From contig NC_067398.1 in the NCBI RefSeq assembly GCF_016432865.1, positions 654,968,001 through 655,032,000 of the forward strand: DNA of 64,000 nt, given 5' to 3'. The notes beneath the pieces are model-generated. The model searched no databases. It was not told the DNA's origin and saw nothing but the letters and a program-made list of their open reading frames with translations. This stretch comes from Antechinus flavipes. Taxonomy: Eukaryota. Below are positions 3,091 to 59,800 of this stretch, piece after piece. Position numbers and translations under genes: made by a program. The first letter of the stretch is position 1, and each line of letters starts with the position of its first letter.

Positions 3091-11511
<8,421 letters not shown>

Positions 11512-11733: not shown

Positions 11734-12021
11734 CTAGAAGGAGCGGAGGGGGATGGGGGGGAGGGGAGGTGCCGGGATGTGGGTGCACGCCGGCCTGAGG
11801 CCTCGGCCCTCATCGCCCCCATCGAGACGAGCTGCCGCTGCCGCCGCCACCGCCGCCACCGCGCCCAGCCACCCCCTCGCTGCCTGCCCAGCTTTCTCCG
11901 GCCCCGGGCCCTCGAATAGGCCTGGCCGCTCCCCGAGGCCCAGCCCCGGCCCGGCGCGCCTGCTCCTCCTCCACAGGCCGCGGCCGACAGCTCCGACCAG
12001 GGCTCGGGCCGAGCCACTCAC

Positions 12022-12230
12022 CGGGACCCGACGGTGACCGGGGCGGCGGAGACGACGGCGACAGACGCGGGGACGGCGGCGGCGGCGGCGGCGACTCCTC
12101 GCTCTGCGACTTCTCCCGAGACACACACGGGGAGGAGCGAGGAAGCGAATAAAAAAAAAAAAAAAAAAAAAAGAACGCGACTTGGCCTGAGCCGCAGCGG
12201 CTTCCGTCCGCCGTTCAAACTGTCTCCCCC
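12022..12230 (-). other. TNPO2: TNPO2 first (non-coding) exon in a CpG island
   Basis: Donor CCG|gtgagt at 12022/12021, GC/CpG-rich, promoter motifs just upstream. TSS position is approximate. Confidence 0.7.
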
Positions 12231-12400
12231 CAGCCAATCAAGACGCTGGGCGGGCCCTGTGACTCGAGAGGAGGGAGGAAGACTAAAGACGGCGAGCGGT
12301 GGTGGGAAAGGAAGGAAGGGCGGAGCACGTCCTCGAGGGCGTCACGTGGTCGGCGACCGCCATCGCGAAACCAGAAGAGGATTTCTCGTCACGTGATTAG
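12230..12400. promoter_or_regulatory. TNPO2 core promoter
   Basis: CCAAT at 12234-12238, GC box at about 12248-12254, and two GTCACGTG E-boxes (CACGTG at 12343-12348 and 12390-12395). Confidence 0.7.
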
Positions 12401-14029
12401 GGAGACCGCTATGTCTTGAATCTCTGGCTTTGGGGTTCTCCAGTCTCGTTTTCTTCTCTGGCATCTGTCTTGGTGCCTGGTACCGGGGACGATCCCTGGG
12501 TCCTGGAAGAGTTCAGGAATTCTCCGGTGAAAGCACCTGGCTCGTTTCCTCTCTAGGACAACTCTTTTACGTGCTCCAACTCCCTTCTCCCATCCTTCCT
12601 GCTTTATGACTTCGGACAGAACAGTTAACATGCCTGGGTCTGAGATCCCTCATGCGAAAAAGGAGGAATCTCTAAGGCCTCTCTTCCACTGTCTCTGACT
12701 CCGTTACCCTGCAGATGCAGGGGCACTCTAGGTACTACAGCGCATGGTACCTCTCCCAGACTGGCCTTCCAAGTTCCCTGGTTTGTTTTCTTCTAGATTA
12801 AGTGGAGGAAGTGACTGCAGATTCCTTGGCACACACTCACAGCCTTGCCTTCCCCAAGCCCTTCTCTCTTCCTGCCTCCATCTCACCCCGGGCTGTTTCT
12901 GCTCCCAGCTTCCTAAAACCCTCCTCTTCTCTTCCCCGCCCCCCTCCCCAGCAGGCAGGTGCAGAAGGTGGCTGGCATTTTGTTTGTTTTCTGGGTTGTG
13001 CCCTCACGCTGGGAGATCCAAAGAGCCATGATTCCCCCAATTGCTGCCATCTATCAAGTATCTCAAACATTCCAGAGTTTAGGAAATAGGGGAGGATGGG
13101 AACAGTAAACACAAAGACCTAAGGGAGAACGAATTGGCCGTTGTTGCTCACCCTTAGTGAGGACAGCCAGAATGGGGGAGGGAATTAGAGTGATTAGGTT
13201 GCCTGGGACTCCTCGTGGCACCTCTAGATATGAGGATCTTGGATTTAGGCTCCTGGGCAAGTGGGAAGTGGCAGTGCTTGGGGAGATGAATTAGAAGAAC
13301 AGGTCTTGCTGGAATTTCCATTGTTTGGGGCACAAGAAGGAACCGGGAACTTAGATTCTGAGGAATATGGCCCTCATCCCTAAAGTTGGAGGGAGTACAG
13401 AGAAAAGAGCAATATGAAGTCAAAGATCCTGAAACCGAATCCTTGCTTTGCTGTGTAACTTTAGATAAAGATCTCCCTTGCCTCAGTTTTCATCTCTCCA
13501 AAATAAAAGAAGTTCTAAGTCATGATCCTATGAACACCCCTGGATGCCCAGGCTTTGCAGCCTAAGTCCAAGGAAAGCCCTTCGCTTTCCTGGGACTCTC
13601 CTAGGTTTAAAAGAAGGATCCTGAAGGGTATCGCCTAGGGTGGGACAAGGGATCAAGGACCCTACTTGCTCCAATGAAAGGATTGTTATGATAAGAATGA
13701 GGGAGGGCAGGGAAAAGACACTCTTCTATCCTACCCAGGGCTCAAGGCCTTTGCCTTCATTCTTTCCACAAATATTTCTCAAAACTAGGACGCCCTACTC
13801 GCAGCATGGGGGGAGGGAGGAACGGACCAGGATGAAAGAATGAGCTCAGTCCCAGGCTGGGAGTTCCCAATCACCCAAGGGAGTTAAGAAAGATTCAAAA
13901 ATAATTAAAATATAAGGCAGGATGCTGTCCAAGCGGGTTACCGTCCCTCCCCCCAGATCACCGCTGCAGTCAGCTTAGGTGTCCAGGGTTTACAGAACCT
14001 TGGGGACTCGGCACAGGATAGAAGCAAGA

Positions 14030-14370
14030 ACACGTGGTTCCCGCCCCTCTACCTCCGCCCGCACGGAAGCTAGTGGAGGTGAGGCACCTGCGCGTGCACA
14101 TGCGCATGACGAACTCAGTTCATCGCTCAGTTTCACGCCCCTTCCCCGAGAGCGCCGGTAACTACATCCCCCGCGATCCTCTGCGCCTCGAGCCGCAGCA
14201 CTTCCGTCTGGGATTGTAAACAGCGGTGAGTCCAAGTTGGGCCCAGAGCCCCCGCGGCGGCGGAGGGACGATGGCGGGGCTCCGCCTGTCCGGGGTCTCT
14301 GGAGCTGAAACGGACGCCGGGGCCTGGGAGCCTAGAAGGAGGGGCCTCGGCCGCCTCTGAGTGGACCGGG
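14030..14370. promoter_or_regulatory. CpG-island promoter of the RNF11-like gene (possibly bidirectional)
   Basis: NRF1-like tgcgcgtgcacatgcgcatg (about 14089-14108), ETS cores on both strands, and ZNF143-like aactacatcccc (about 14160) and ctgggattgta (about 14208). Confidence 0.6.
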
Positions 14371-14376
14371 CCAGGC

Positions 14377-16576
14377 ATGGGGAATTGCCTGTCTTCTCAG
14401 CGGTCCGGCATCAGGGCTGGGGACGAGGTGGGGACCGGAGCCACAGACAATCTGTCGTTGCTCAACGACTCTGGGGAAGGAAGCGGCTTCCCCGGGGACC
14501 CGCCGCCTCCCCCACCTTCCCAGAGGGCGGGCACCCCGCTGGACAGGCCAGGCTAGGAATCGAAGAACCGGGGCATCTGCCACCCGCCGCGACCCAGAGA
14601 GGCAGGGAAGGGCTGAGCACAGAAGAACCCGGCCCTCTGCCATCACCCCCAGGGCCCCGGAGAGGCAGGGCAGGACTGGGTCAGGGGATCCCTGTGTCCG
14701 CTATCACCCCCGAGAGACCAGGCAGAGCTTTGTTCTAAAGAACTCCGGCAACTGCTATTGCCCATCCCCTGCCCCAGAGAAGCAGAGCAGGACTGGCAAC
14801 AGGGACCAACCCCCTAGTTCCCCAGAAAAACAAGGCAGGGCCAAGCATAGGGAGCCCCAAGCATCTCACCCATCACCCCCAGAGATGGGGGACTGGGCTG
14901 GGCACCACCCCGCCCTCCAGGGAGGGGCAGGCAGAACTGGGGACAGAAGAACCTCAGCTGTCCACTTCCGCAACCCTGAGGATCAGGCTGTACTGTAGTC
15001 AGAGGAAGCCTTTGGAATCTACTCTTTTCATGCTACAGAGTGAAGGACGTGATAGAACAGAAGGGAAAAGGAAGAGAACTGGGTTGGGAAGGGGGGACTT
15101 TGGAATTTACCAAGCCAGACAAGGTCGGGACTGGGATTAGGGGGACTGACTCTAGAAATCCCAAAACAAGAGAAGCACAGAAGCCCTCCAATTGAATAAG
15201 CTCATTAGGCAGGAGGAGTAAGGATTCAGAAAGACCTGTTTAAATTCTCTCTGCCAGTTACCAGCCCTGTGAACTTTGCCAAGTCTGTTTCCCGGTTTTC
15301 CTCTATGGAAAATGAAAGTGTCGGTTTAAATGATCTCTCAGGCCTTTCCAGCTCGAGGTCCTATGGTCAGACCCAGCGATGGGGGAGTGTATTGCAGTCA
15401 GCAGGACAGTAGTGAACATAGAGGAATGAGGTCTTGGTCCCATTCTGAAGTGAGCATTGGAGTTTGTGAATATTAGGATTCCTAGGGAACAGTAGAAGAG
15501 GTGCAAAGGGTACAGGGTTCATAGATCCTTTAAAGCAGACCTCAAGCTAGACCCACTTGAAGCCCCACAGGGAACTAGACACAGGCAGGTTGAAAGAGAA
15601 GTCCCAGAGACAAGTTGCCATGTATATCCTGTCCCCATCCCCCAGGGACGGGAGCCAATCCCAGTGTACCACCCATCTCCAAGCCAGAGCCGACTGGCCG
15701 CACAGCTCACAGAGGAAGAGCAGATCCTCATCGCCCAGAGAATTGGCTTCATCCAGCACCTGCCCAAGGGCATCTTCGACCCTGGCTCTGAGGGGTCAGA
15801 AAAGAAAATGAAAGAGTAAGGGTGGGGAACAGGATGAGGATACCCCAGGCACCTGAAGGGAATGTTGTCAGCTCGCAGCCTAGTCCTCCTGGGAGCTGCA
15901 ATCTGAGGTTGCTCAGTAGATGAGGCTCTCAATCTTTTTTTTTTTTTCTTTTTAGGAGGGAAGTCTGGGAAAACACCCAGGCCCCGAGACATACCCATGT
16001 TGTTCTTGACCATATCCTTGAGCTCAATCCCAACTGGGTTCTCTTTGGAGTTCATCATCTAAATTCACTCCAGCCCCACCCCACCCCTCAAGTTTGACAG
16101 CTTCAAGGTTTGGGGTCTGTCCCAAACTGTGAAATAAAAGGCAGGGCCAGGATCTTCTACTTTTCTGTTTTCTCCAGATTCCCAAGAGCAAGGCCAAGGT
16201 CTGCCATTCCTTGACTCCCCCAGGCTGAGATCCTTGAAGGCAGGCCCTAGTCTCTTCAGTCAACAGTATAGTTCAAGTCTGGGTACACAGTGGGAGGCTT
16301 CTATGGCAATCAGAGCCGAAATGTTGGGCATGGAGGGGGTGGGTTGTGGATGGGTGAAGAGGGTGAGAACTGGTGCTACATTCATCCATCCCTGGTCCCT
16401 GCAGGTGTGTGATCTGCATGTTGGACTTTGTGTATGGGGATGCCATACGCTTCTTGCCATGCCTGCACACCTACCACGTCCACTGCATTGATGACTGGCT
16501 CATGCGCTCCCTCACATGTCCCTCTTGCATGGAGCCAGTGGACACAGCCCTGCTTTCCTCCTATGAGACAAGCTGA
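14377..16576 (+). CDS. RING finger protein 11-like (RNF11 paralogue, RING-H2 E3-ligase family), 3 coding exons
   Basis: Exon 1 starts at ATG 14377 (MGNCLSSQ...DNLSLLNDS...GDPPPPPPSQ); donor probably GAG|gtgggg at 14427. Exon 2 is 15646-15815 (170 nt, GREPIPVYHPSPSQSRLAAQLTEEEQILIAQRIGFIQHLPKGIFDPGSEGSEKKMKE). Exon 3 is 16405-16576 (172 nt, CVICMLDFVYGDAIRFLPCLHTYHVHCIDDWLMRSLTCPSCMEPVDTALLSSYETS*). All 8 RING-H2 ligands are intact. Confidence 0.88.
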
Positions 16577-17755: not shown

Positions 17756-17777
17756 AATAAAATGTGTTGCAAATAAA
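17756..17777 (+). terminator. Tandem AATAAA poly(A) signals of the RNF11-like gene
   Basis: AATAAA at 17756-17761 and 17772-17777, followed by GU-rich ctgtgctgtttg. Confidence 0.6.
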
Positions 17778-20200: not shown

Positions 20201-21872
20201 TTATTTCACCAGGGGCCGGGTTTTGTCATCATCACTGCACTGATGTGCCTTGTATTTTTTCACTTCCGCCATGTACTTGGCCCAAGCGTCTCCTTTACTT
20301 GTCATAACCTGGGGACAAAAGGGGAAGACAGGCATACAAGCCATGAGGTCTAGAAGCAAGGAGCTTCAGGATGCCCAAAGCCCACCTTTCCTCCTAGGCC
20401 TTAGACCCTGAGCCACTAGATCAGCAGCCAGGTTCACAGCAGCCCAGTGTTTCTAGCCCTGAAGTTTGCACTTTGTGGCCACTCAGGCCAGCCAGTCCTA
20501 TTCCCCCCAGACTGCCTAGGAAGCAGACACTCACCTCATCCTCCGTCTTCTGCTTCTTGGCTACTATTCCTGTCTTGAGGGCTAGCTTGTTCCCGCCTCT
20601 CCGCTTGCCCACCTGGGTGAAGGGATAGAAGACTGCAACCATTATAGGAGCCCTGGGGGCTGCCCTGGCGGCCATGTAGCCCACTACACAACGGGACAGG
20701 GAGTCCTGGCCTTAGATCATCTTAGCTCCTCATGCCTGTCGTGTAGTACCAAGCAGTGCCCAGCCTGGCCAACCTACGCAGCAATCAGAGAGGAGCACAA
20801 GGGACTTCTCAGGACGATGCAGCCCGAACCTGCTCAGTCAGCCCCCGGCAGGGCAGCAAGCTGGATGATAAGCCTGGCTCCCACTGATACCGCCCGCGTA
20901 CCCCAGCCACATCCCCCGATCCCCAAAAGAACCCTACGGCTAGCCACCGAGGCCGGTACCACTTGGTCATCTCAATGGCCAGCCTCGGAGAGCCGTGGAG
21001 GCCGCAGCTCCAGCATCTGAGATCTCAGCATCAGTCTGCCGGGTTCGCGCGCATCTTTCTGAGGACGTCTCCCTTCCTTCCCCGCCAGAGTCCCTTCCAC
21101 GGCCTCGCCAGCCGCGGCACGCACCCGCCCGTCCCGCCCCCTTCCATCCAGAGCAGGCCTGGTAGCAAAGGTCAAATTTCGGGGACTGAGGATGACGACG
21201 CAAGCGGGGGCCCCAGGTCGGGGCGCTGCCGGATTTAAAAGGCGGGGAGGGGAAGCGCTGCGAGCGACTGCCCCATCCCGCCCTGGCCCGACCCGCACCG
21301 TGGCCCCGCCCGAGGGGAGGCCCGTGCTACGGGGCCCTCGGCGGCGGAGGCGCCCGATCTGCCCTCCCCCGCTCCCGGGATGGGCCCTCCCTCTGTCTGT
21401 CTCTCGGTCTGTCTGTCTGTCCCGGCGGCGCGGCGCGGCCCGTCCCGCCCTCCCGCGGGCGGCGGCTCCTTACGAAGCTGAGCGCCGCCGGGCCGGGCCC
21501 GCTCCTCTTCTTCGGCTCGCCGCCGCCAGCAGGGGCGGCGGCAGGGGCGGCGGCCCCTGGGGGCGCGGGCGGTTCATCCGGACTCTGCTGCTGCTGCCGC
21601 TGCCGCCGCCGCTCCTCCTCCTCCTCCATCTTCCGCTTGAACAGCTCCAGGAAGCTGCCGTCGTTGGCGAACAGGTTCACGCCCCCCGAGGCCGGGCCCG
21701 ACGCCGCCGCCGCATCTTCCTCCTCTTCCCCGGCTCCCGAGCCCGCTCCGGACTCGGCCCCGGCGCCACCCGGCCCGGGCCACCGGCTCCCGCCGCCTCC
21801 GCCAGTGCCGCCGCCCGCGGGGCCCGACGGCTCCCGGCCCGCAGGCTCCGCCCGTCTCCCTCGGGCCGCCAT
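20201..21872 (-). CDS. TRIR: Telomerase RNA component interacting RNase (C19orf43), 3 exons, 194 aa
   Basis: Exons 21474-21872 (MAARGRRAEP...GVNLFANDGSFLELFKRKME...LSF), 20535-20612 (VGKRRGGNKLALKTGIVAKKQKTEDE) and 20201-20308 (VMTSKGDAWAKYMAEVKKYKAHQCSDDDKTRPLVK*). GT-AG introns; start codon in a YY1-type AAAATGGCGGC context. Confidence 0.96.
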
Positions 21873-54274: not shown

Positions 54275-54655
54275 GAGAGAGGGAGAGAGAGACAGACAGA
54301 CAGACAGAGGCAGANNNNNNNNNNNNNNNNNNNNNNNNNNNNNNNNNNNNNNNNNNNNNNNNNNNNNNNNNNNNNNNNNNNNNNNNNNNNNNNNNNNNNN
54401 NNNNNNNNNNNNNNNNNNNNNNNNNNNNNNNNNNNNNNNNNNNNNNNNNNNNNNNNNNNNNNNNNNNNNNNNNNNNNNNNNNNNNNNNNNNNNNNNNNNN
54501 NNNNNNGAGAGAGACAGACAGACAGAGGCAGAGAGAGAGAGACAGAGACAGAGAGGAGAGAGAGAGACAGAGAGCGGAGAGAGAGACAGAGACAGAGAGA
54601 GACAGAGAGACAGACACGAGACACGAGAGACAGAGAGGGAGAGGGGATAGAAAAA
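54275..54655. repeat. (GA/GACA)n microsatellite spanning an assembly gap
   Basis: Purine-rich GAGA/GACA repeats on both sides of 192 N (54315-54506). Confidence 0.9.
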
Positions 54656-55136
54656 GAGCGCGCGAGTGTGTGTGTATGCGCGCGGTGTGTACGCGCTCGA
54701 GCGCGGTTATCTACAGCATTGTGATTTTCTGTGTCCGCAGGTGGGGAGGAACTGGAACGCAGCGGTAACTGCGAGGACGCTTCAGCCCCTTTCTTTCCTT
54801 GGATGACCTGATCTAAAAAGGAGAGAGGGGAGTGGGGGGAGCGGGGGACTGCGGCTAATAATCCCCAGGCTCCTGCAGCAGCTGGGGCACTAGTCGGGGG
54901 TCCGCCCATAAATTACCTTCCGTACCCCCTTTTAGAACTGGTTGCAAAAGAGGTACCACGGCCGGACTGGGGTGCGCGGGAACAAGAGACTTCTCCAAAA
55001 GAATGCCAAAAGTAAAGACTGTCAGTGACTTCACAACCAGGAGAGGGGCGGACGGAAGGGGTTATTGAGGGTTCAAGGCCCGGTACTGGGCTGGGGGGAA
55101 GGGGAGAGGGAGGAGGCTAGGAAGATAGTGTCATTG

Positions 55137-55137
<1 letters not shown>

Positions 55138-55198
<61 letters not shown>

Positions 55199-55199
55199 G
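55138..55199. repeat. (GT)n(GC)4(GT)n microsatellite
   Basis: Uninterrupted alternating purine-pyrimidine tract. Confidence 0.95.
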
Positions 55200-56842
55200 G
55201 TGTGCTTCCCCTCCCCCATAACCATGGGGCGGGGCGGGGCGGGGCTGGTGGTACAGGGAGGAGCCCCCCTCACTCTCTCCAACCCCCAGCCTGGGGCACA
55301 GCCCCTGTCCCGAGCTGCTTCTGTCTCCTAGCTCAGCTCCCTGCCGCTCTTGTGACTACTGGTGAGCTGGGGTGCAGACTCGGGGGCTTCGGAATAAGAG
55401 GGCAGGGGGACGCTGGGAGCTGGAGATCCCGGGAGGCTTCACCTGAGGCTGATATTTTACAGGTTATAGGATTCAGTCTAGTAAATTACAGACTAGGGTG
55501 TCGGATATCCATTAGCTATCTCATCTATCACCCCGTAAGACCGGGGAAACAGGCTTCAATGGGGGGTCAGAGCGACCTGGGACTATTGATTGGGAATTGA
55601 AAAGGCTTTTGAAGTCTTCTGGTCCAATCCTCTCGCTTTAAAGAGTAGACTGAGCGCAGGAGGATAAATGACTTCTTCAATGTCATGCAGGTTAAGTAAG
55701 TGTCAGAATCGGGATTAGAATTCAGGTCCTCTGACACCAAATTCCGGACTCTCCGCTGCGTCGCGCTCGCTCCCTGGGCAAGTTTGAGGAGAGCCGGTTC
55801 TGTAACTCAGTTCTCCTTGACTTGGACGTTCTCCTGGGTACGCTGGCTTTCAGAGACTCGTGGCAATCGGTGAATGACTGAGGTGGGGTCGCAGAAGGGG
55901 GGACCGAGGTGGCCTGAAAACGGGAACCCAGAAGAAGAAATGGGACTCGGAAACCGAAGAGGGGGAGGGATACCTGGGAGTGAAGAACGAGGACGAGGCA
56001 GGAAAACCTAGACTGGGGGGGTGGGGGAGGTGAGGGGCAGGAAGAGAATAAATTCCGGAGAACTAGAAGGTTTTGACCGGGGACTGGACATGGAAAGTCC
56101 AAATTCTAATCAACGAGTGAACAAGCGCTTGTTACTAAGCCACAGTATCAGGCTAAGCGTTGGGATACAAAGAAAAGTAAAAAAAAAAAAACAAAAAACA
56201 ACAAACTCCTGTCCTCAAGTAACTTACAGTCAAATGGAGGGAGACCACATTAATCAAATATGTACAAACAAGATCTATAAAAGATAAACTGGAGAAAAAT
56301 CGATTGAGAGAAAGCAGTAAATTGAAGTTGGGGGAAGCGGACTCGAGAAAGGCCATCTTGCAGAAGGCAGGATTTTTTTTAGCTGAAACCAGAGAAAATA
56401 GAGAAGATGAGGAGGGAGAGAGTTCCGGGCATCGGGGACAGCAGAAAATACCCCGAGAGGGGGAATGTCTAGTGGTGGGGGCGACACAGCAAGTTTCATT
56501 GTGGCTTGGAAAGCCGAGAACAGGGAATGAGGACGAGATACGGAGACGCTGGCACTGAGGATCAGCCCCGGGGCCAGAAAAGATCGGGGTTCGAAGGATG
56601 TGCACCCGAATGACAGGAGATCGGGACGGCCCCGGCCAGGACCGGCTGGGGACTGTCTTTCTCTTTCTTGGCTCAGGTGGGATTCAGGAGACCTACTCCT
56701 GGGGCGCTGAAAGATCAGCAGAGGCAACCCCGACTGTGGCGGGCAGCGCTGGGGAAGAGTTCTGGGACCTGGGTGACCTGTTCAGCAGAGTGACTCTCAC
56801 CCGCTCCTTCGCTCGGCCCTCAGCCCCAGCCCGACCCCCGGC

Positions 56843-59800
56843 ATGACCGTGACGTACACAGCCCGCGTAGCAAATGCTCGCTTCGGGGGGTTCTCCAAGC
56901 TGCTGCTGCTTTGGCGGGGAAGCATTTACAAATTACTCTATCGAGAGGTGCTGGTCTTCCTCGGGGGGTACCTGGTCCTGAGCGCCATCTATCGGTGAGG
57001 ACAGGCCTTGGGTCAAGAGGATGGGATACAGGGGAATCTGGAGGGTGGAGGGATGGAGTGGGATGGAAACTCTCCGAGAGATGAGGGTCTCCAGTGCAAA
57101 GAGACGGTCACGGGGGGAGAGAGGAGGTGGTGCTCAGGGAGAGATGTGCCTCTAACTTTCCCCGCTCCACCCACCCAGCTTTATCCTGACGGAAGACCAA
57201 AGACCCTACTTCGAGAAATTAGTCATGTACTGCGACCAGTACGCCAACCTCATTCCTGTCTCTTTTGTGCTGGGTATGAAATCACTCCCTCTCATCTCAA
57301 CCCCAACCTCGGGACGCACTTAGCTTTCCTTACCCCTCAGCCCAAGCACCCTTCAGTCCTAGAACTCCTATTCCCAGGCAACCCCTAGAGCTCCCCACCG
57401 CCCCCCGACTTATCCCATGCAGACCTAGAACCTTCAATTCTATAGTCCGGAGCCTTAACCTCAGCTTCTCCATTTCGTCCGGATCATTTGTGCTGAGCCC
57501 CTCCCTAACCTAGACCTTTTACAGCCCTCAGTCGCTACTAGGGACACCAGGAACTTCCTTTTAACCCCTTTCAGAACTCAGACCCAAGAATTTATCCAGG
57601 GCAGACCCTGTGCTAGTTCGCAATGAAACAACTCCTGCCTTGAAGGAACTATTGGAGGAAGGGAGGAATGTAAACATCAAAATAAATAGAAACGCTTCCT
57701 AGCTGTGTGACCCTGGGAAAGTCGTTTAATCNNNNNNNNNNNNNNNNNNNNNNNNNNNNNNNNNNNNNNNNNNNNNNNNNNNNNNNNNNNNNNNNNNNNN
57801 NNNNNNNNNNNNNNNNNNNNNNNNNNNNNNNNNNNNNNNNNNNNNNNNNNNNNNNNNNNNNNNNNNNNNNNNNNNNNNNNNNNNNNNNNNNNNNNNNNNN
57901 NNNNNNNNNNNNNNNNNNNNNNNNNNNNNNNNNNNNNNNNNNNNNNNNNNNNNNNNNNNNNNNNNNNNNNNNNNNNNNNNNNNNNNNNNNNNNNNNNNNN
58001 NNNNNNNNNNNNNNNNNNNNNNNNNNNNNNNNNNNNNNNNNNNNNNNNNNNNNNNNNNNNNNNNNNNNNNNNNNNNNNNNNTATCAAAATAAGTAGAAAA
58101 AGATATATAGATACAAAAATGATGGAGAGGGAAAGACACTGGAGAGATTCAAAATGCACTTAAGCAGAGCTTTGAAAAGGGTTAGGGATTCTGAGAGACT
58201 GTAGGTGAAAAGGGAGGATATTTATTCTAGGCAAAGCAGACAATGAATGCAAAGTCCCTGAGGTGGAAATGGAGTATCTAGTCCAAAAGAACAACAAATA
58301 GGACAGTTTGACTGGACTGCTCGGTGCTTGAAGGAAAACAAGATGAAATATGCTTGAAAAAGTAACTTGGGAAGGTTTTTACATGCCAAATAGAGAAATT
58401 TGTATGTTATCTGAGAGACAAGAGGGAACCACTGGAGTTGGTGTAGTGGTGCTGGTGGGGGATTTGTGGATTAGGAATATGCACTTGGCAAGGAAAGACT
58501 GGAGAGGAGGGGAGGTATGACACAATTGGTAATTGGGCAATGATTGCAGTCAGGCAAGGGATGATGAGGTTTTCACTTATGACAAAGGTGATATAAAGTG
58601 ATGGATGTGAAATGTATTGTGAAGACAGAATAAGATTTGACAACTGATTGGATATAAGAAATGAGGGATAGTGAGGAATCTAGGATGACTCTAAATTTGG
58701 AAAGTTGGTTGCCCAGAAAGATGATGGCATCCTCAAGAGAAATAGAAGGAAGAGTTTGGGGGTTTGAAAATTAGTTTTCTTGTGGGATTATGAAGCTTGA
58801 GATGTCTATGGAACGCGTGGAACTGGATTTAATGAAGACACAGCTAGATTTATGTAGATGTAAGAGATATTGCACAGAGATGGTTGTTGATGAGCTCATC
58901 AAGACAGGGTAGAGAAAGCAAATGGTCCAGAACAGAACTCTGGGGTAGTGTACACCCAGGTATTAAGAGACCATAGATCTCTATGTATCAGAGGAGACTC
59001 AGGACTGGTCAGAAAAGTAGGAAAAGAACCAAAAGAGAAGTCTCATGAAAACTCAAGGTAGAAACTTTTTTTTTTTTTTGGAGGCAATTGGGGTTAAGTG
59101 ACTTGCACTGGTGCTCTATTCACTACACCAACTAGCTATCCCTTAATTTTTTTTTTAAAGGTGGAAACTCTTAACCTGAGGATAGATTTCAGGGGATCTA
59201 TGGAACATGGATGGGGCCAAAATTTTCTCAATGAGCACAAAAGATTTATCTGAGAAGGGACCCATGAGTTTCATTAAACTGCCAAAGGGATACATAACAC
59301 AAAAAAAGATCCCTGGTGTGGAAAGTGTGGTCAATATTTTCAAATTATGGAAAGAGTTCAAGAAAGAAAAGGACAGAGAAAAGGATTTCCAATGTGACAA
59401 TTAAAAGGGTTTATAATCTTGAGAAGTAAGTGGGAATAGACCAAAGCATAGACACCTTTGTTCTAGGAGCTTGGCTATCAGTCAAGAAATGTTAATTAAG
59501 AGCTTCTAGTGTGCTGGGCACTATGCTAAGAGCTAGAGATACAAAAAGAAGCAGAGGACAATTCTTGCCTGGAATCTTTTTGGGGGGAATTACCAGGAGG
59601 CCAGTGTCCTTTTGGATAGAAAAAATGATAGACAATAAAAGCTGGAACGAAAAGAAAAGGCTGGCTTATGAAAGGCTTTGAATGCCAAACAAAGCATTTG
59701 GATTTGATCTTGAAGGTGTTATAGAGTCACTAGAGTTTACTGAATAAACGGGTGATTTGAGAAGGTCATTTTGATAGCTGAGTGGAGGATGGATGCAGTG

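Follow-up and report, generated by a model that had tools for sequence, protein, structure and literature searches.

The window analysed here is a stretch of 64,000 nucleotides from the genome of Antechinus flavipes (NC_067398.1, positions 654,968,001 to 655,032,000, forward strand). Its positions 14377-16576 contain, on the plus strand, a three-exon gene of the RNF11 family, which lies between TNPO2 and TRIR, both on the minus strand. We consider it very likely that this locus is the A. flavipes copy of a second vertebrate RNF11-family gene that was kept in marsupials and sauropsids and is missing from the placentals examined. We use two labels of our own: K-type for RNF11 proper, whose members start with MGNCLKS, and S-type for rnf11a and RNF11-like proteins, which start with MGNCLSS. 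The gene is real and already present in public annotation, and the finding is correct and largely known to the databases; the remodelling of exon 1 in dasyurids is the sole part that goes beyond them.

The RefSeq protein XP_051827575 (P0271, 130 residues, 'RING finger protein 11-like') maps to CM028217.1 of assembly GCA_016432865.2, where 22200/22200 bases around the locus are identical to the window. The joined translation of exon 1 (14377-14427), exon 2 and exon 3 is identical to this protein. RefSeq orthologues are present in at least nine other marsupials, namely koala, wombat, brushtail possum, sugar glider, tammar, Dromiciops, Gracilinanus, Monodelphis and devil. Our literature search found no paper on a second RNF11 copy (rnf11a or RNF11-like, ohnolog, marsupial gene loss), and the name 'RNF11B' turned up only as a typographical error for RNF144B. 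The word paralogue is absent from a 2020 review of RNF11 (PMC7697665).

Structure of the RNF11-like gene

The first coding exon as annotated (14377-14427, plus strand) comprises 17 codons, MGNCLSSQRSGIRAGDE, and follows the splice model of XP_051827575 exactly. Its ATG at 14377 opens the N-terminus MGNCLSS, which bears the Gly2/Cys4 acylation motif. Exon 2 (15646-15815, plus strand; acceptor cccccag, donor gtaagg) has 170 nucleotides, runs from phase 0 to phase 2 and encodes the conserved central block of RNF11, PVYHP...QLTEEEQ...IAQRIG.IQHLPKGIFDPGSE. The coding part of exon 3 (16405-16576, plus strand; acceptor cctgcag) has 172 nucleotides including the TGA and encodes a RING-H2 domain and a C-terminal DTALL tail. 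With the donor placed after 14427, intron 1 has 1218 and intron 2 has 589 nucleotides. Exons 2 and 3 are free of stops and frameshifts, and both acceptors as well as the exon-2 donor are canonical.

Exon 3 matches the Pfam family zf-RING_2 at E=4.9e-13 (overall 3e-13 to 5e-13), and the spacing read from the sequence, C-x2-C-x14-C-x-H-x2-H-x2-C-x10-C-x2-C, is that of a C3H2C3 RING with all eight zinc ligands. The solved RING-H2 domains of RLIM, RNF38 and Arkadia align to it at E-values of 2e-14 to 5e-12, with eight zinc ligands, the RING alone being what they have in common with it; no chain of the RNF11 family was found in the PDB at E<=0.001. No Pfam family was assigned to exon 2. Searched on its own with phmmer against 1.8 billion representative proteins, exon 2 gave 165 matches at E<=0.001, 78 of them at E<=1e-10, with a top identity of 85%; wherever the sequence was inspected (P0001-P0070, and the RING-bearing ones among P0071-P0150) the matches were all RNF11-like.

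Upstream of the ATG lies a CpG-rich region (14000-14600; GC content 0.64-0.70, CpG observed/expected 0.69-1.01 in 200-nucleotide bins), the putative promoter and 5' untranslated region of the gene, which is distinct from the TNPO2 CpG island at 11800-12400. A pattern scan found two putative AATAAA poly(A) signals on the plus strand (17756 and 17772; 17756-17777), about 1.2 kb past the stop codon. A first-pass annotation, made from the letters of the window, had already listed the CpG-rich 5' end, the MGNCL start, the uninterrupted exons of 170 and 172 nucleotides, the C3H2C3 RING and the poly(A) signals, and all of them were found again where it had placed them.

The first intron follows the PPxY-Q/R codon in phase 0 and the second interrupts the KE|C codon in phase 2, which is the three-coding-exon arrangement of the family. 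S-type genes have both introns at identical codon positions in species ranging from frog to marsupials, exons of 170 and 172 nucleotides occur in Antechinus, devil, koala, Varanus, turtle and Xenopus, and read-through isoforms of K-type genes are interrupted at the same two places. RNF11 copies do arise in mammals, as the extra K-type RNF11-like copies of bats (P0228, P0230) illustrate, and a processed retrocopy of RNF11 mRNA would be one way to obtain such a copy. The gene in the window, however, has its own CpG island and two introns with canonical acceptors. Since both introns occupy conserved family positions and phases, a retrocopy is excluded, just as the first-pass annotation had argued, and we assign this origin virtually no probability. 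The bat proteins P0228 (Pteronotus) and P0230 (Sturnira) are themselves K-type, have longer branches and group with tetrapod RNF11; they are probably lineage-specific RNF11 copies, unrelated to the TNPO2-TRIR gene.

Two types of RNF11 in vertebrates

K-type proteins carry the signature residues MGNCLKSPTSDD... and KGVYDPGRDGSEKKIRE, and S-type proteins are recognized by MGNCLSSQ..., SLLNDS, KGIFDPGSE.SEKK.KE, CMLDF and LPCLH.YHV. That KGIFDPGSE and SLLNDS resemble fish rnf11a had been pointed out before, and both are indeed S-type signatures; the SLLNDS...PPPP stretch, however, is most likely spliced out in Antechinus (see below).

A maximum-likelihood tree was built from 57 proteins, with seven invertebrate-like outgroups and about 155 columns. 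P0117, P0107 and P0130 were omitted from the second tree; in the first one P0117, a long-branch outgroup, had landed inside the S-type clade. The S-type clade is recovered with 96/97 support and contains sharks and rays, teleost rnf11a, three frogs, squamates, a turtle, an alligator, an emu and ten marsupials. Within it the bony-vertebrate S-type sequences are supported at 98/93 and the marsupials at 98/100. Because the tree groups shark and teleost rnf11a with the tetrapod S-type, the sequences indicate that the K-type/S-type split predates the divergence of cartilaginous and bony fishes. It might go back to the two-round (2R) genome duplications, an idea whose single basis is that human 1p32 and 19p13 presumably share many paralogous gene pairs; we take human RNF11 to be at chromosome 1p32.3.

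RNF11 proper (rnf11b in teleosts) has the same three-coding-exon structure and intron phases as the Antechinus gene, and also the MGNC start, the PVYHP...QLTEEEQ...IAQRIGLIQHLPKG block, the RING-H2 domain and a C-terminal DxxLL. Identity between the two is about 65-70% overall and 81-88% over exons 2-3. RNF11 proper differs in its place in the tree, outside the S-type clade, and in its chromosomal neighbourhood, and unlike RNF11 proper the Antechinus product is without the N-terminal DxxLL and PPPY. Fish and shark rnf11a and the tetrapod RNF11-like proteins (Varanus P0153, Pangshura P0156, Xenopus P0170, with P0222 of Cyclopterus among the fish) are members of the same 96/97 clade and show its signature residues and 170/172-nucleotide exons; these rnf11a and non-mammalian RNF11-like proteins keep PPPPYQ and DDLSLL, whereas the Antechinus product has neither. 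The orthologues at the same locus in koala (XP_020850742), Monodelphis (XP_001362925) and devil (XP_012397555) show 0-5 residue differences in exons 2-3.

The high overall similarity to RNF11 might also be expected of an RNF11 duplicate that arose recently, at the DNA level, within marsupials and landed by chance between TNPO2 and TRIR. However, constraining marsupial S-type and amniote RNF11 proteins to form a clade lowers the log-likelihood by 53 and is rejected by the approximately unbiased (AU) test (p=0.00013). The diagnostic residues are, moreover, common to sauropsid, amphibian and fish rnf11a proteins, and lizard and turtle have the gene at this very locus, while in frog it adjoins TRIR. 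A recent duplication has next to no chance of being correct. That the gene is an old duplicate had been proposed from the sequence alone, and the position of the marsupial proteins inside the 96/97 S-type clade is in agreement with it.

The archosaur S-type proteins (emu P0159, alligator P0180) have terminal branches of about 0.21-0.24, compared to about 0.01-0.04 in turtle and squamates, and emu is the only bird S-type among the matches listed. P0100 (146 residues) is a divergent RNF11-like protein with an MGNCLRC start, a degraded PPxY and an altered C-terminus past the RING.

Genomic neighbourhood of the S-type gene

Upstream of the gene, and divergent to it, an N-terminal coding exon of TNPO2 was identified by peptide tblastn at 11341-11439 (minus strand). 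Its peptide has 97-100% tblastn matches in koala, lizard, turtle and pig, in which the respective gene calls carry IBN_N/HEAT. The downstream, convergent neighbour is TRIR (telomerase RNA component interacting RNase; 20201-21872, minus strand), a 194-residue gene call with the coding part of exon 1 at 21474-21872; its exon 1 peptide is 89-98% identical to marsupial TRIR, with E-values down to 4e-67. Beyond TRIR the window contains GET3 and then BEST2. These peptide matches confirm the two flanking genes named in the first-pass annotation.

The order TNPO2(-)/RNF11-like(+)/TRIR(-) is shared by koala, sugar glider, devil, Varanus and the Pangshura turtle, and Xenopus tropicalis has RNF11-like(+)/TRIR(-)/GET3(+), so that the comparison of synteny which had been suggested as a check gives a consistent picture (the order in sugar glider, as well as that in elephant, was taken from gene calls only). 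Teleost rnf11a, unlike the tetrapod gene with its TRIR neighbourhood, adjoins an NFI-family gene and a heme oxygenase gene, as seen in Cyclopterus lumpus (L005:1-15052), and no TRIR match was found in the 22-kb Cyclopterus rnf11a locus. As judged from these gene orders, TRIR has been a neighbour of the S-type gene from the tetrapod ancestor onwards, if not longer, and in amniotes the gene sits between TNPO2 and TRIR.

Placental and monotreme loci

The claim that the gene was kept in marsupials and lost in eutherians is borne out in its first half by the RefSeq orthologues listed above. As to its second half, no placental or monotreme S-type protein is found among the best 120 of 907 matches to the koala protein, and the sole placental entries under an RNF11-like name are the two K-type bat proteins described above. 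In pig the locus has the order GET3/TRIR/TNPO2, and the TRIR-TNPO2 interval of 7.5 kb, which is free of N, contains no gene call. A tblastn search of this interval with five S-type proteins produced only proline-rich low-complexity matches, and nhmmer searches with DNA profiles of exon 2 and exon 3 detected nothing above threshold. As a control, the same two profiles scored 3e-35 and 5e-48 on a teleost that had been left out of the profile. When marsupial and pig loci are compared by blastn, the first exons of TNPO2 and the 3' end of TRIR align and nothing in between does. The elephant TRIR-TNPO2 interval (6.3 kb) has no gene call either. The support for loss of the S-type gene in placentals thus comes from the DNA sequence in pig and from gene calls in elephant, which is as far as the backing of the second half of the claim extends.

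A sub-threshold nhmmer match of 37 nucleotides to the end of exon 3 is present in pig (L008:16444-16480, minus strand; E=0.027, 25/37 bases). It is on the expected strand, about 3.5 kb from TRIR, and too weak to count as a relic; it may stem from the lost gene or be due to chance. The distance from TRIR to TNPO2 exceeds 10 kb in platypus (L006:12426-22425) and echidna (L007:12349-22348), compared to 6-8 kb in pig, elephant and marsupials.

Remodelling of exon 1 in dasyurids

In koala the first exon spans 54 codons, the last of which read ...PPPCR, with AGG|GTGAGC as the splice junction. In Antechinus the homologous, ancestral donor site (14527-14528) reads GC (AGG|GCGGGC), and the exon-1 open reading frame (14377-14556) runs into a TAG at 14554, with no in-phase GT donor past the proline stretch. 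The sole phase-0 GT donor in Antechinus exon 1 is GAG|GTGGGG after codon 17 (14427|14428), which is the RefSeq junction. It is common to both dasyurids, Antechinus and devil (Sarcophilus), and RefSeq uses it in both to yield 130 residues; the exon-1 donor has thus shifted upstream with phase 0 maintained. The other marsupials have the ancestral donor and proteins of 163-173 residues that include SLLNDS and the proline-rich segment, whereas the dasyurid proteins are annotated at 130 residues. Residue 18 is Ala in all other marsupial proteins, and its codon is GCG in koala, the only non-dasyurid whose DNA was inspected. This points to a single C-to-T change in the Ala18 codon (GCG to GTG), which would have created a new 5' splice site and with it the 130-residue product.

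The 3' section of ancestral exon 1 that was abandoned (14428-14526, plus strand), delimited by comparison with koala and devil, is still in frame in Antechinus (...TDNLSLLNDS...PPPPPPSQR). In devil the ancestral GT donor is intact, and an upstream deletion of 1 nucleotide (GGCTTCCCC to GGCTCCCC; L010:10001-10160) breaks the frame. The lesions in this segment therefore differ, devil having the deletion and Antechinus an intact frame but a GC donor. Counted by eye, Antechinus and devil differ by 7 substitutions and one indel in its roughly 99 nucleotides, a divergence that looks intron-like. Judged from the splice sites, the SLLNDS...PPPP stretch is probably spliced out of the Antechinus protein. 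A model of 163 residues that uses the GC donor (14526|14527) is disfavoured by the RefSeq model and by the weak GCGGGC context, and was retained only as a row of the tree.

What this does to the motifs of the protein can be read against RNF11, a doubly acylated RING-H2 protein with di-leucine sorting and PPxY docking of NEDD4-family HECT ligases (PMC7697665). The N-terminal MGxC of its family provides Gly2 myristoylation and Cys4 palmitoylation, and the N-terminal acidic di-leucine and PPxY motifs are treated as central in the RNF11 literature (PMC7697665). The MGxC motif is present in the Antechinus product as MGNCLSS at 14377, so that acylation is predicted from the sequence, and exon 2 contains the central block PVYHP...QLTEEEQ.RIAQRIG.IQHLPKG. 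The 130-residue product thus keeps Gly2/Cys4, the central block, the C3H2C3 RING-H2 domain and a C-terminal DxxLL, here DTALL. The N-terminal di-leucine motif (DxxLL/DxxxLL), TDNLSLL at about 14440-14465, lies downstream of the annotated donor and is outside the product; the marsupial proteins from outside the dasyurids do contain it. The PPxY position in Antechinus reads PPPPPPSQR, without tyrosine, and belongs to the segment excluded by the annotated splice. Across the marsupial orthologues P0166, P0175 and P0273-P0278, wombat, Monodelphis and Gracilinanus retain the PPxY tyrosine, while another residue stands at its site in five species: Cys in koala and Trichosurus, His in Dromiciops, Ser in tammar and Gln in glider. 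Since wombat, the sister of koala, keeps the tyrosine, several independent losses are implied.

Selection on the coding sequence

Pairwise comparison over 390 aligned coding bases gave, for Antechinus and koala, 0.020 nonsynonymous (dN) and 0.109 synonymous (dS) substitutions per site, with a dN/dS of 0.19 (p=0.0016, one-sided Fisher test, as for the second pair) and 0.25-0.27 substitutions per site in the introns. For Antechinus and devil the values are dN 0.010, dS 0.059 and dN/dS 0.17 (p=0.017), with 0.05-0.07 substitutions per site in the introns. The ratios are not near 1, the outcome that would have spoken against the first-pass interpretation. The coding sequence is under purifying selection, which continued after the exon-1 change of dasyurids. 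Exons 2-3 carry seven replacements that are clade-wide in marsupials. Four sites that are near-invariant in 43 other vertebrate sequences have changed on the dasyurid branch (T to A, R to L, L to F, A to T); the L-to-F replacement is also seen in Monodelphis.

These four changes, together with the ancestral donor altered from GT to GC, the PPxY and N-terminal DxxLL left outside the annotated product and the intron-like divergence of the abandoned segment (7 substitutions and one indel per roughly 99 nucleotides between Antechinus and devil), could mean that the Antechinus gene is a decaying unitary pseudogene, one that first lost the ancestral exon-1 donor and whose remaining sequence is now drifting. 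However, exons 2 and 3 are open and their splice sites intact in both dasyurids, both have an in-frame GT donor, which the RefSeq models use, and the Antechinus/devil dN/dS of 0.17 speaks for constraint that persisted after exon 1 had changed. We therefore regard decay as improbable.

Possible function of the dasyurid product

By analogy with RNF11, the ancestral S-type product would be an N-myristoylated and palmitoylated, endosome-associated, membrane-bound RING-H2 protein, whose PPxY would dock WW-domain HECT ligases of the NEDD4 family and whose acidic di-leucine motifs would direct sorting. The predicted dasyurid product would retain the acylation motif, the central block, the RING-H2 domain and the C-terminal DxxLL and would have lost the N-terminal di-leucine and the PPxY. 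The selection data indicate that this 130-residue form does something. We tentatively propose, at somewhat less than even confidence, that dasyurids make a natural separation-of-function protein of the RNF11 type, which is under purifying selection, acylated and RING-competent and would recruit neither NEDD4-family HECT ligases nor GGA/AP-2. Together with the replacement of the PPxY tyrosine by four different residues in five other australidelphian species, this might mean that the marsupial S-type has left the HECT-adaptor role and was kept for a function that depends on the RING or on the central domain. Acylation, localisation, ligase or adaptor function, the donor actually used and the loss of HECT binding are all features that we infer.

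Several points weigh against the interpretation given above. The alignment behind the tree has only about 155 columns, from a highly conserved protein, the K-type rows are near-identical and lack a resolved basal order, and a hagfish sequence is without placement. The split could derive from an early duplication other than 2R. At the DNA level the placental check covers one species, pig, and in platypus and echidna no gene call or RNF11-like exon was found in the 10 kb beyond TRIR, TNPO2 lying farther away than the sequence reached. Both the choice of the exon-1 donor and expression rest on RefSeq models, and the weak GC site at 14527 might still be used at some level. Finally, the four dasyurid replacements could reflect a partial relaxation of constraint.

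As genome biology, the S-type gene is a case of ordinary differential loss of an old duplicate, one already in RefSeq. RNF11 has been studied as a single invariant vertebrate gene, and most of the sampled vertebrate groups, marsupials included, carry a second conserved copy. As this copy is missing from the two placentals examined, it matters when RNF11 knockouts of fish or frog are compared with those of mouse. Furthermore, the natural variants that are without the PPxY tyrosine, or without both PPxY and di-leucine, offer a way to find out which motifs are needed by the conserved core.

Minor features of the window

Intron 1 contains degenerate direct repeats of about 60 nucleotides (14519-14953, plus strand), which a seed-based repeat finder sorted into families D1-D6 with a spacing of about 57-63 nucleotides. 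Tandem Repeats Finder (TRF) reported no tandem repeats in intron 1, the degenerate units falling below its threshold. The first unit overlaps the ancestral exon-1 donor. In the Ensembl/UniProt model of the devil gene (P0261) the first coding exon corresponds to one such repeat unit, whose homologue in the window is at about 14752-14833 and ends AAG|GCAGGG. Farther downstream, two runs of N (54315-54506 and 57732-58081) are located upstream of and inside BEST2. The first of them sits in sequence with low-complexity translations in several frames, and past it a dinucleotide run of the (CA)n type, recognized from the translation, extends over about 55120-55200 (around 55150).

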